Notes under the pieces: model-generated
Told to the model about the DNA's origin: nothing
The model's input: the letters and a program-made list of their open reading frames with translations, nothing else
Database searches by the model: none
Assembly: GCF_001194135.2 (NCBI RefSeq)
Contig: NC_068983.1
Coordinates: 145,324,165-145,388,164, forward strand
From: Octopus bimaculoides
Taxonomy: Eukaryota
DNA: 64,000 nt
Direction: 5' to 3'
Made by a program: the position numbers and the translations under genes
In this document: positions 35,781 through 43,328 of the stretch, piece after piece
How the letters are laid out: the number at the start of each line of letters is the position of its first letter
How positions within the stretch are numbered: the stretch's first letter is position 1

Positions 35781-35786
35781 TTTATT
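35781..35786 (-). terminator. Polyadenylation signal AATAAA of the Cys-rich peptide gene
   Basis: TTTATT on the plus strand, ~105 nt 3' of the stop codon. Confidence 0.55.
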
Positions 35787-35889
35787 TGAAATAATCCGTT
35801 TTTAATTTTCGACCTGAAAATAACTTTCCTTCTTCCTCCCTCCTGTATCATTCATTATCTGACAATGAAATAAATAATGTTGTTTTAAC

Positions 35890-36084
35890 TCACAAAAACG
35901 TCTCGGCTGAACAGGCAGTTTTAAAACAACTCTTGAAGCTGGTGCAACACTCATCCTTAGAGTTTGTTTTGCGACATTCATGGAACTGACTTTCACATGG
36001 AGTATAACATTGTGCGGCAGGGTTGGTAACTGCAGATGCTGCAACCACTAGTCCCAAAAGAAAAGCAACGAACATAGTTTTAAC
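35890..36084 (-). CDS. Small secreted Cys-rich peptide, exon 2: VKTMFVAFLLGLVVAASA-VTNPAAQCYTPCESQFHECRKTNSKDECCTSFKSCFKTACSAETFL*
   Basis: Strong acceptor (poly-T tract then CAG|GTT). Hydrophobic signal core ending in ASA, 7 Cys in 33 residues, TGA stop, and AATAAA ~105 nt downstream. Confidence 0.85.
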   Translation of the reverse strand, partial: VKTMFVAFLLGLVVAASAVTNPAAQCYTPCESQFHECRKTNSKDECCTSFKSCFKTACSAETFL

Positions 36085-36890
36085 CTGAAAAAAAAAAAAA
36101 AACACATTAAAAAATATAGATGTAGGTTCCACTTCGTGGTTAAGAAACTCGCATTGCAACAACTCGTTTTCGGGTTCAATCCCATTGTGAGTTACCTTGA
36201 GCAAGTGTCTTCTACTACAGCACCAGATTGACTGATTGATTGATTGAGTGAGTGAGTGAGTGAGTAATTGATACAAATATGGAGGCTTATAATCAATTCG
36301 ATGATTGTTGCAAGTCTTCAGTTGTGACAAGTTCGGTGAGTGCGGAATTATTCAATAAATACAGTCTTCTCTTTTGTCGTCACACGTAGTTTATCAATAT
36401 ATACAAACAAACACACACACACACACACACACACACATATACACACATATGTATGCATGTATGTGTATATCTGCATGTATATGTGTGTGTTTTTTGCGCT
36501 TGTCTATGGCCCACACCGCTTGAAAACCGGTGTTGGCTTTTTTACGTCTTCATAACTTCGCATTTCGGTCAGAAAGAGCCTTTTAAAAAAATAAGTACTG
36601 AGGTCGATTTGTTCCACTAAATCTTTCAAAGCGATGCTCCAGCATGACCGCTGTCCAATGATTGAAGTAAATAAAAAGATAGAAGATAAAATTACCAGTA
36701 TAATTTTACTTGACTCAAAATTATTTTTCAGAGCATTTTACAACGTGATGGATGGAGCACGTCCAGTCATTACATTTTTACTAAGAGTTTAGGTCGTTTG
36801 CCAGCAATCTGATATGACATCGAAGTAAGCTGGTGACATCGGAACTGAATCATGCGCGTGCGTCAGTCTAATCAGAACTTTTTTTTTAAA

Positions 36891-37337
36891 AGGCTGTGTG
36901 GTAAGAAGCTTGCTTCCCAATCACATAGTTCCAGGTTCAGTCCCACTGTGTTACACCTTGGGAAAGTGTCTTCTCCTATAGCTTCGGGCCGACCAAAGCT
37001 TTGTGAGTGGATTTGAAAGACGGAAACTGAAAGAAGCTCGTCGTATGTGTGTGTGTGTGTGTGTGTGTGTGTGTGTGTGTGTGTGTGTGTGTGTGTGTGT
37101 GTGTGTGTGTGTGTGTGTGTGTGTGTGTGTGTGTGTGTGTTTTCCCCCACCACCGCTTAACAATCGGTGTTGGTGTGTTTACTTTCCCGTAATTATGGTT
37201 CGGCAAAAGAGACCAATAGAATAAGTAGTAGGCCACTCAAAATAAGCCCTGGAGTCGATTTATTCGACTAAAATCCTTAAAGGCGGTGCCTCAGCATTGC
37301 TACAGTCAAATGACTGAAGCAAGTAAAAGATAAAAAA
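36891..37337 (+). mobile_element. SINE family A copy in the peptide-gene intron
   Basis: Same head, body and tail as 61163-61685, with an internal (GT)n. Confidence 0.85.
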
Positions 37338-37869
37338 TAGCCGTCAGCTAGAAGCGAATATGTCTTGGTAATGTGTAGCATGCTTTCGCTAATCCTTTTA
37401 GGTGCTTATCTTGCTCGAGAACACAACGCGTCGCTCGACCCACGAATTAAACCCACAACTATATGACAATGATGCCAATACCCTTAACTGCTAGGCTATG
37501 TTCCTTCACTATTACAATAAGTACTATAAATGAACTTTTGTTATGAGTTCTTCTTTGCTACATTACGTATAGTTTTACTTATTTTTCATGCGGATGGAGG
37601 TCTTGGGTAATTTATATCAGCCATTATAATTTTAGACACCAATTGGAGTATTTTGTTGTACGTCAATATAGTGAATCTATGGCAAGTACAGAAAAGGTTG
37701 TTTACATAGAAGGTGTAATAAGGCTGAAACTTATCCAAATTTGTCCCACATACTTGTCAAAATTATATTAAAAATAATGTGAGCTGTTGAACTGATGTTT
37801 TCTTCTCCACACCACAAAGGCATCGATTGATTAAGTACTTATTTAGATTGTCTTTATTATACTTCCTAC

Positions 37870-38425
37870 GGATCTTTTTTAAAACGGGGGGCCACATTTT
37901 TCATTAACGAAACACTTTGAAACTTGGAACACTGGTAGAATGTGTCATATAAAACATCTTTTTCTTTTAGTCTTCTTAAAAAAAAAAAGAAATCCATAAG
38001 TTATTCCATGTTAAAGTTGTCGTATTTCTGTAATTTCAACCAATCACTGACGTCCATTCAGCCGATATACATTAAGTGCCGACTACATAAACAAACGATT
38101 CTGAAACAATTAACCCTAATCCTAACCCTAGGGTTAGGGTTAGGGTTAGGGTTAAAGCAAATAAAACGAAGGTATGGAGATTAAATACGCTTTACACCGC
38201 TTAATCAGCCAAAGGAGTAAATATAAACAACTAAATACTTGTCAGTGATTGGTTGAAATTATCGAAATAAGACAATTTTTTACATGAAATAAATTCGAAT
38301 ACAAAAATATTTTTCTGTTCTATAACACAAAATAGATAAGTATACGAAGTTTGAAAGTCTTTCCGTACCAAAAACACTACGTAAAACATTAATGAAAAAT
38401 GTGGCCCCCGTTTTAAAATAGATCC
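37870..38425 (+). mobile_element. MITE family 1 (GGATC termini, 8-bp TSD, internal telomeric palindrome), copy 1
   Basis: TIR GGATCTTTTTTAAAACGGGGG(G)CCACATTTTTCATTAA / TTAATGAAAAATGTGGCCCCCGTTTTAAAATAGATCC. Flanks CTTCCTAC and CTTTCTAC (7/8 match). Confidence 0.9.
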
Positions 38426-38869
38426 CTTTCTACATTATGTATAACACTAATTTAACCGAAAATTTGATATTTCTCACTATGGCTGTCATTTCTTGACATC
38501 ACTATGGCAGAGAGACTGCGCTGCATTTGTTGAAGTTACTTATGAGTCATTGTATCAATGTTCAGATCTGTCTGTTCGACAACCTGGAGTTGTCTGTGCA
38601 AACGTCCAGAACCTTTTGCGTGACAAGAGTGGCGGGGTATGAGTCAGTCAGCCGTCTTCAACACTCTATGACGAGTTAAAGCGTTAAGATAGTTTTTATA
38701 GGAGACAAGAGGTCAAATTTTAGAACGTTCGAGAAAACCATATCACGTCACAGCTTCACGCCGATTGGCGATTTATAGACCGATCACGTGAAACTATGAT
38801 GGTTCACTCATGTTGAATATCAAACGGTTAGGTTTCGAATCTCCGCTAAACGCTATTTGAAGAAGACTG

Positions 38870-41996: not shown

Positions 41997-42225
41997 AGGC
42001 GGCGTGCTGGCAGAGTCGTTAGCACGCCGGGCGAAATGCTTAGCGGTATGTAAGAAGGTATTTCGTCTGCCGCTACGTTCTGAGTTCAAATTCCGCAAAG
42101 GTCGACTTTGCTTTTCATCCTTTCGGAGTCGAAAAATGAAGTACCAGTTGTGTACTGGGGTTGATGTAATTGACTGCCCACCCTAACTCACAAAATTTCA
42201 GGCCTTGTGCCTATAGCAGAAAGTA
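41997..42225 (+). mobile_element. tRNA-derived SINE family C
   Basis: GGCG(T/A)GCTGGCAGA...TTCTGAGTTCAAATTCC head and ...AAGTACCAGTTG...CTGGGGTCGAT...AAAATTTC(A/G)GGCCTTGTG body. Related copies at ~41750-41910, 42271-42476(-), 44975-45130(-), 49210-49410, 51013-51210, 51535-52320 (interrupted), 53955-54160(-), 54600-54740(-). Confidence 0.8.
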
Positions 42226-42270
42226 TTATAACTGAATATAGATATATATATATATATACATATATATGTA

Positions 42271-42476
42271 TATTCTACTCAAGGCACGAGGCCCGAAATT
42301 TTGGGGGAAGAAGCCAGTTGATTAGATCGACCCAGGACGCAACTGGTACTTAGTTTATCGAATCTGAAAGGACGAAAGGCAAAATCGACCTCGGCGGAAT
42401 TTGAACTCAGAACGTAAAGACAGACGAAATACCGCTAAGCATTTCGCCCGGCGTGCTAACGTTTCTGCCAGCTCGC
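42271..42476 (-). mobile_element. SINE family C copy, inverted against 41997-42225
   Basis: Reverse complement of the adjacent copy, ~45-nt spacer. Confidence 0.8.
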
Positions 42477-43217
42477 TGTCTCTCTCTCTCTCTCTCTCTC
42501 TCTTTCTTTCCATATATATCTGTCCTGTTTTTAAGTCTGTTATTATTCTATCGGTTTCTTTTGTCGAACCGCTAGTTTATGAAAGTGTAAACAAGCGATG
42601 GTGGCGGGAGCAAGCACAAACGCGAAGATGCATAGGACTTCCACACATTCTCTCATAAAGTCTGAGACTTGAATTCTAGTCGAATGTCTGGACCATTCTC
42701 TTACGTAATTGTAGTATTTTGCCATGTTATATTACCAGCAGTGTGAAGATGGTGGGTAGCAGAATCGGTAAAGCGGTGGACTAAACAAGTTGCGGAAATC
42801 TAATATCATGCCCACCCACTCTTTTTTTCTGAGCTCAAATCATGTCGGTGTCGACAATGCTGTTCATTCTTCCATCATTGATAAAATATTTAGAAGTCAC
42901 TTTGATTGATTGTTTCTTCTCCCTACATACAAAAATATTCCTGACTTTGAGTTTGTTAGAAACCGTTGTGGGCTTTGTAGCTGTCATATCACCAAAAACG
43001 TACTGTGTATTTGGATTTGACTGTCCTGGCATGATTCTTATTTACTATTTTATCTAACCTTCTTTTCTAAACTAGCAGCACGTGAAAAAGTCACCAAGAT
43101 TTTAAGATATCTTATCAATCGTCTCAACGTCTCAACCAAGTCAATGAAAGTAAGAAAGGTAAGAAGAAGAAAAACACATTGATTAACAATCTTGGAAAAC
43201 ATGAATATCTTACTCAC

Positions 43218-43220
43218 CAT
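43218..43220 (-). CDS. Small secreted Cys-rich peptide, exon 1 (initiator ATG only)
   Basis: Minus strand ...TACAACA ATG|GTGAGT, with A at -3 and a consensus donor. A TATAAATA box lies ~100 nt upstream. Phase 0 fits the acceptor at 36084. Confidence 0.7.
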
Positions 43221-43288
43221 TGTTGTATATGTCTGTTGAACTGACTTAGCTGCTGAAAGAGAGAAATGTCCTGACCAAACGTCAATAG

Positions 43289-43328
43289 ATTCTGATGCAA
43301 GCCTGACAGACCTTCACGTATTTATATA
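43289..43328 (-). promoter_or_regulatory. TATA box and Inr-like site of the Cys-rich peptide gene
   Basis: Minus strand TATATAAATA (43328-43319) followed ~30 nt later by ATCAGAAT (43296-43289). Confidence 0.6.

Follow-up and report, generated by a model that had tools for sequence, protein, structure and literature searches.

Gene structure and splicing

The 64,000 nt stretch of the Octopus bimaculoides genome analyzed here (contig NC_068983.1, positions 145,324,165–145,388,164 of the forward strand; hereafter the window, numbered from its first nucleotide) very probably carries, on its minus strand, a three-exon protein-coding gene for a secreted cysteine-rich protein, the last exon of which falls in an assembly gap (Table 1). 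An earlier examination of the nucleotide sequence alone (the original prediction) had placed at this locus a complete two-exon gene for a 65-aa product, with a first exon consisting of a 5′ untranslated region (UTR) plus a lone ATG, and with a stop codon and an AATAAA motif at the end of exon 2. Reading of the sequence confirmed all the motifs listed in that prediction at their places on the minus strand, as well as the length of intron 1; likewise, joining the ATG to positions 36084–35890 gives 198 nt in frame, and the spliced translation is exactly the 65-aa product that had been proposed.

The evidence on transcripts comes from contigs of public RNA runs (labeled X1, X2, and so on), of which X13 and X14 are O. 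vulgaris-like. The junction of exons 1 and 2, ...ACAACAATG/GTTAAAAC..., occurs in contigs of X2, X9, X11, and X41, from the same species as the window, and the ATG (43218)/GTT (36084) junction is also found in contigs of X13 and X14, which makes six runs in total and bears out the splice that had been proposed between these two positions. The ATG at 43220–43218 is directly followed by GTGAGT, and the same ATG/GTGAGT arrangement is present in O. vulgaris; together with the RNA junction, this corroborates a first coding exon that contributes nothing else than the start codon.

Contigs covering exon 2 span exactly 35894–36084/5 in X1, X2, X4, X5, X9, X11, X16, X17, and the O. vulgaris-like X14; that of X3 stops at 36075, which is the contig's own end. 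Exon 2 codes for residues 2–64 plus two bases of codon 65, comprising the remainder of the predicted signal peptide (to Ala19, 36031) and a core with seven cysteines. Past 35894, all ten runs from the same species (at least four studies) continue with CTGCCCTCCTTCGGCAGATGATGCTGCTGA, which encodes FCPPSADDAA, the splice being at TTTTT/GTGAGT. This exon 2–exon 3 junction is also present in X14, whose loose end is identical to O. vulgaris. Additionally, the depth of RNA contigs was zero over positions 35645–35889 in X1, X5, and X9 and over 35866–35889 in X2, X3, X4, X11, X14, X16, and X17, and no unspliced contig past 35894 was found in X2 despite a word depth of 2,627 for its spliced contig. In the RNA, exon 2 therefore ends at 35894 and is followed by sequence that is not adjacent in the genome, indicating that exon 2 is internal, that the TGA is part of a splice donor and that the AATAAA is intronic.

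The original prediction extended exon 2 through 35893 to the TGA at 35890, with polyadenylation after the AATAAA at 35781. Both motifs are present in the sequence, and the open reading frame (ORF) closes at once when intron 2 is retained, which would leave room for this form as a minor intron-retaining isoform. As the main form, it is already contradicted by the transcripts: positions 35866–35889 are without an RNA contig in ten runs from the same species, including the deeply covered X2, all contigs splice at 35894, and the GTGAGT donor is conserved. The annotation of O. vulgaris also reads through into exon 3, and the seven cysteines of the shorter product would leave one unpaired. We consider the two-exon model most improbable, and that the gene has three exons, the third one being outside the letters of the window.

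Table 1. Coordinates in the window of the features of the gene for the cysteine-rich protein.
Feature	Positions	Strand	Remarks
TATA box TATAAATA	43326–43319	minus	Read directly; identical in O. vulgaris
Inr-like site TCAG	43295–43292	minus	33 nt downstream of the TATA box
Exon 1	43218–43293	minus	5′ UTR and ATG (43220–43218, the sole coding triplet); 5′ limit uncertain
Intron 1, 7133 nt, GT..AG	36085–43217	minus	Junction in RNA contigs; holds a small gap (41351–41360) and interspersed repeats
In-frame ATG (Met5)	36073–36075	minus	Start codon for mRNAs with the alternative 5′ exon
Exon 2, internal, 191 nt	35894–36084	minus	Acceptor poly-T plus CAG/GTT; RNA contigs
Intron 2 donor GTGAGT	35888–35893	minus	Encloses TGA 35892–35890; donor kept in O. 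vulgaris
AATAAA	35786–35781	minus	Intronic; use not seen in RNA contigs
Assembly gap, 575 N	33581–34155	minus	Assigned exon 3 by collinearity with the O. vulgaris locus

The third exon and the assembly gap

The sole relative of the product retrieved from the databases is a protein from O. vulgaris of 92 aa (P0001; CAI9719506.1, UniProt A0AA36ANR1), annotated as "Hypothetical predicted protein." Identity between the two products amounts to 91% over a compared length of 65 aa and, after ...TFF, the O. vulgaris protein continues with CPPSKDDAAEGDDVWGMEGAFKRPKNE. Its locus (L001) contains three coding exons: an ATG-only exon preceded by the same TATA box, exon 2 at 15071–15261 and exon 3 at 18736–18820. 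The first 30 nt of exon 3 from O. bimaculoides, as read from RNA, match O. vulgaris exon 3 at 27 of 30 positions and translate in frame to F-CPPSADDAA. These 30 nt are absent from the window, and tblastn comparisons of the window with the 65-aa product, with the O. vulgaris protein and with its tail revealed neither a paralog nor exon 3.

The window contains ten gaps of N, and collinearity with O. vulgaris indicates which of them affects the gene. Positions 15869–16869 of L001 align to 35231–34156 in the window, ending at the 575 N gap, and positions 18994–19622 align to 33580–32958, beginning just past it. O. vulgaris exon 3 is located between these two aligned blocks and, therefore, exon 3 of O. 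bimaculoides falls in the gap. Furthermore, the longest 3′ extension in the RNA is 219 nt (X2), which falls short of the ca. 258 nt required to emerge on the other side of the gap; the entire last exon would hence be hidden in it. Judging from this collinearity, the gap must hold the codon for an eighth cysteine, an acidic tail, the stop codon and the 3′ UTR, amounting to at least 219 nt of mRNA. In O. vulgaris, exon 3 is followed by a (TA)n tract and by low-complexity sequence rich in AT, which could be the cause of the assembly break. The position of the last exon in the gap also explains why the gene is absent from the protein set of its own species; that genes this small are often missed by annotation, as had been anticipated, holds in this case, with a transcribed gene that is lacking from the protein sets of O. 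bimaculoides and whose only relative is a hypothetical protein.

The small gap at 41351–41360 lies within intron 1, and O. vulgaris DNA is collinear across it (91% identity) and has 10 bases where the window has 10 N; consequently, it does not affect the coding frame or the continuity of the gene.

Transcript 5′ ends, alternative 5′ exon and expression

Exon 1 contigs start at 43216 and extend to 43290 (X9), 43280 (X41), 43326 (X11), 43389 (X32), and 43590 (X2), with low depth in X9 and X41; at the other end, they are joined to exon 2. The start of transcription near 43293 that had been proposed is compatible with these data as a TATA-driven start, although the ends of the exon 1 contigs vary from 43280 to 43590; since contigs from X2, X11, and X32 reach 43326–43590, some transcripts start further upstream and would carry upstream ATGs. 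The block of 203 nt containing the promoter and the 5′ UTR is 96% identical to that from O. vulgaris, with the TATA box unchanged, and the TATAAATA box may function as a promoter element.

In contigs of X1, X4, X5, and X16, exon 2 is joined at 36084 to an alternative 5′ exon, ...TCCTTCTCTCAGCTTTTCTTTCAGTATTAA/. Its end before the junction (...CAGTATTAA/, with terminal letters ...TTTCAGTATTAA) includes an in-frame TAA, and translation of these mRNAs must consequently begin at Met5. The resulting product is MFVAFLLGLVVAASA, which leaves the mature protein unchanged. The last 30 nt of the alternative exon were not found in the window or in the 10 kb upstream of the O. vulgaris gene; the exon may localize to another gap or beyond position 64000, and it implies a second, distant promoter. 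Codon 5 is CTG (Leu) in O. vulgaris and the Met5 start is not conserved; the ATG of exon 1 is thus the conserved initiator, and the sole start codon in O. vulgaris.

Contig depth for the gene was around 6–16 in X1, X3, X5, X9, X11, and X41, 131–585 in X17, X4, and X16, and 2,627 in X2, and it reached ca. 900–2,000 in the O. vulgaris-like X13 and X14. The run with the highest expression, X2, in which the transcript is represented by a contig of 783 nt, uses the TATA-proximal exon, and X4 and X16 use the alternative exon. Three further runs taken as raw reads to look at the start site and at intron retention (X20–X22, ca. 12 million reads each) contained no reads on the gene.

Conservation and selection

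The genes from the two species share the TATA box, the ATG-only exon 1, the boundaries of exon 2, the start of exon 3 and a collinear locus that also includes a downstream Serinc gene. They differ in that the O. vulgaris gene encodes Leu (CTG) at residue 5, has five conservative replacements in exon 2 and has K70 in exon 3, where O. bimaculoides has A70; its introns are also shorter, with ca. 5.1 kb for intron 1 versus the 7.1 kb found here. The O. vulgaris protein is uncharacterized and, hence, no function can be deduced from it.

Nucleotide differences in exon 2 fall disproportionately on synonymous sites: of 12 differences in 191 nt, seven are synonymous and five lead to conservative replacements (M/L, A/V, S/T, E/D, and E/D), and all the cysteines are kept. 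The corresponding proportions of nonsynonymous (pN) and synonymous (pS) differences between the two species are 0.034 and 0.168, with a ratio of ca. 0.2 (Fisher p = 0.006), indicating purifying selection on the coding sequence. The comparison that the original prediction had suggested, of cysteine conservation and of the two kinds of substitution in a related species, is therefore favorable to a functional protein.

These data also bear on whether the locus is merely transcribed and its ORF is fortuitous, that is, a young orphan without function at the protein level. Database searches found no homologs outside Octopus, as would be expected in that case, and exon 2 is 93.7% identical to O. vulgaris DNA, little more than the introns on either side of it (85–93%). 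Conversely, a fortuitous ORF does not account for the concentration of substitutions at synonymous sites, with the low pN/pS and its associated p value, nor for the preservation in two species of the eight cysteines, the start codon, both splice junctions and a frame running through three exons, or for the very high contig depth in some samples of both species. We therefore regard this explanation as very unlikely, and a gene under selection for its protein product as the appropriate reading.

The downstream neighbor in the window is a Serinc-family gene, whose first coding exon (MGCIIGSIGTSVS..., minus strand) is at 22707; the ortholog is likewise followed, in collinear position, by a Serinc gene (PF03348) in O. 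vulgaris. In the latter species, positions 1–7287 of L001 contain, on the minus strand, an annotated upstream neighbor of 75 aa that starts with MEKLFPRVDSEIF... and is possibly a spurious model. We considered this neighbor as a paralog, but it shows no resemblance to the peptide and lacks a signal peptide.

Features of the predicted protein

Once exon 3 is included, the protein contains eight cysteines, at residues 27, 31, 38, 47, 48, 54, 59, and 66, all of them conserved in O. vulgaris and with the spacing C-x3-C-x6-C-x8-CC-x5-C-x4-C-x6-C. Exon 3 supplies Phe65, completing the split codon, along with the eighth cysteine and the acidic tail. The mature peptide of 46 aa and seven cysteines that had been proposed is thus superseded by a chain with eight cysteines, which in O. 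vulgaris would have ca. 73 aa and a mass of ca. 8.1 kDa, with 9 K+R versus 12 D+E and an isoelectric point (pI) of ca. 5.0 (ca. 6.7 for the core). A classical cationic antimicrobial peptide would carry a net positive charge, and the acidic character of this chain speaks against such an identity.

The N-terminus resembles a signal peptide, as originally noted, with a predicted length of 19 residues (MVKTMFVAFLLGLVVAASA/V). It displays the three regions of classical secreted proteins, MVK, TMFVAFLLGLVVA and ASA/V, with ASA at positions -3 to -1 providing small residues at -3 and -1, and a hydrophobic core in which residues 4–17 have a mean Kyte-Doolittle hydropathy of 2.6–2.9. A single-sequence AlphaFold2 (AF2) model of the O. 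vulgaris protein placed a helix at residues 3–16 in this N-terminal region, followed by two helices at 23–41 and 44–59 and a disordered tail, with a predicted local distance difference test (pLDDT) score of 82–84 over residues 31–60.

From these features, the precursor would enter the endoplasmic reticulum, where the signal peptide would be cut after Ala19 (Ala19/Val20), and the eight cysteines could pair into four disulfides around a hairpin of two helices, which would carry an acidic tail. The resulting mildly acidic protein of ca. 8 kDa would be secreted whole and act outside the cell.

Searches for relatives and comparison with known systems

Pfam searches with the O. vulgaris protein or with the 75-aa product of the window species matched no family at E ≤ 10. 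A phmmer comparison with PDB sequences retrieved a single chance match (E = 6), and Foldseek comparison of the AF2 model, a query of moderate confidence, with the PDB yielded no E below 7 and no TM score above 0.28. Word-indexed searches of 5.8 billion proteins with both orthologs returned only P0001, and phmmer against 1.84 billion representatives returned P0001 and one marginal match, P0002 (E = 4e-4). The latter is a 293-aa sequence from a Logan contig with three tandem cysteine-rich repeats, each beginning with C-x-TPCE-x4-C, as in the octopus peptide, and its relatives occur in transcript catalogs of marine eukaryotes and in the Joint Genome Institute (JGI) collection. Nevertheless, only the C-x-TPCE-x4-C motif is shared, with three weak repeats adding up to the score; we thus discarded P0002 as a homolog, and the match is probably due to chance. 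Neither the sequence of the peptide nor the accession was found in the searchable literature, and the peptide is absent from the supplements of a paper on the salivary glands of O. vulgaris and of another on the proteomics of skin mucus. As had been surmised for this short cysteine-rich product, no described family was matched in Pfam, the PDB or the 5.8 billion proteins, and the gene is, as far as databases show, an orphan restricted to Octopus.

Attractin, the water-borne peptide pheromone of Aplysia, is a protein of 58 aa with six cysteines and two antiparallel helices. As a small secreted molluscan protein with a helical hairpin locked by disulfides and released intact, it illustrates the general mechanism that we propose here. 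It differs, however, in having six cysteines instead of eight, with another spacing, and attractin was not returned by the PDB and Foldseek searches. A BLASTP comparison with an attractin sequence gave E = 0.21 over an irrelevant stretch, without an aligned cysteine framework. Membership of this family would entail six cysteines with the attractin spacing and the conserved helix motif IEECKTS, and we do not include the octopus protein in it.

Conotoxin cysteine framework XIII has the arrangement C-C-C-CC-C-C-C, the same order of single and paired cysteines as in the octopus protein. This is probably a coincidence of pattern. Membership of a conotoxin superfamily would also entail the conserved signal sequence of that superfamily. 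Searches of Pfam and of the 5.8 billion proteins retrieved no family resembling the octopus protein in its signal, pro-region or mature sequence, and short conopeptides differ from the octopus peptide in length, in its predicted helical fold and in its acidic tail.

The genome of O. bimaculoides reportedly contains a class of "novel" genes restricted to cephalopods and with tissue-specific expression. The gene described here resembles them in being lineage-restricted and short, and in its very uneven expression, but differs in not being represented in the O. bimaculoides protein sets.

Proposed mode of action of the product

A small, secreted precursor could also be that of a neuropeptide or peptide hormone, with the cysteine-rich chain, or a fragment of it, being released from neurosecretory cells to act on a receptor. 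The size of the product and its putative signal peptide fit such a precursor, as do the low depth seen in many RNA runs from several studies, the use of an alternative promoter in some of them and the presence of a KR pair in the tail of the O. vulgaris protein. However, the core is not flanked by mono- or dibasic sites: the only dibasic site, KR87–88 in O. vulgaris, is in the tail and is followed by Pro, and KR followed by Pro is a poor site for convertases. We also found no Gly-basic (G-K/R) amidation site, and thus no bioactive segment flanked by convertase sites, often with a C-terminal Gly, as is characteristic of processed neuropeptides. Likewise, the protein shows no similarity to described families (no matches in Pfam or with phmmer among the 1.84 billion representatives) and its sequence did not appear in the searchable literature, whereas the conserved neuropeptides of bilaterians or mollusks normally occur beyond one genus. 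A neuropeptide or hormone precursor is, consequently, an unlikely explanation, yet one that deserves more consideration than a fortuitous ORF.

Because the core lacks usable flanking sites for convertases and for amidation, and because the family is confined in databases to a single genus, we rank an effector or ligand acting as a whole protein above a processed neuropeptide. The product would most likely be an abundant and tissue-restricted secretory protein that acts extracellularly as a ligand or effector such as, for instance, a pheromone, a defense factor or a component of saliva or mucus.

Several points weigh against this interpretation. Exon 3 from O. bimaculoides was read for 10 codons only, the rest being taken from O. 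vulgaris. Secretion and cleavage of the signal peptide were judged by eye and from hydropathy, and the AF2 model is of moderate quality (mean pLDDT 64) and was built without an alignment. Some transcripts start before the TATA box, as shown by X2, with a contig that is collinear with the genome up to 43590. Tissue restriction was deduced from contig depth, which is a poor measure of expression. Lastly, a mature protein with a neutral to acidic charge gives no positive pointer to any single role.

More tentatively, the gene might be the founder of an Octopus-restricted family of abundant, secreted helical mini-proteins with four disulfides and a specific extracellular activity, for example as a pheromone, as a ligand resembling a toxin or as a factor associated with mucosa or eggs, which would be produced from two alternative promoters with two signal-peptide N-termini in different tissues. 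We view this as a possibility worth retaining, if somewhat short of probable.

Repeats in the window

An interspersed repeat is located just downstream of exon 2, at 35249–35640, with further copies at 25587–25768, 28133–28334, and 26288–26378. Contigs on it reach depths of 10^4–10^6, in runs of RNA and of DNA alike, and position 35623 is a branching point for many of them; the repeat has the appearance of an element of high copy number, similar to short interspersed elements (SINE), that is also transcribed. A second family of dispersed repeats, of ca. 150–200 bp, is found in both orientations at 41990–42500, 49200–49420, 51010–51215, and 53950–54170, including an inverted and partly overlapping pair inside intron 1 (42074–42269 and 42242–42418); several copies of this family occur in the O. 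vulgaris locus as well. The window also contains an (AGAC)n microsatellite of ca. 1.1 kb, which occupies positions 62912–64000 and runs off the end, a (TCTC)n microsatellite of 369 bp at 62138–62506 and a (TG)47 tract in intron 1, at 37046–37140.

Implications

At this locus, where the last exon falls in an assembly gap, a plausible stop codon and an AATAAA motif within the intron produced a model that was complete in appearance but false. The corrected model is needed before any synthesis, search by mass spectrometry or estimation of the ratio of nonsynonymous to synonymous substitution rates (dN/dS), considering that the 46-aa peptide proposed originally would carry an unpaired cysteine. The strong expression in some samples of two species, together with purifying selection and no detectable relative, makes this gene worth considering in efforts to discover new peptides. 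Much of the biology specific to cephalopods, including venom, chemical communication, and secretions of skin and suckers, derives from small secreted peptides restricted to a lineage, and these are the kind of product that annotation tends to miss.

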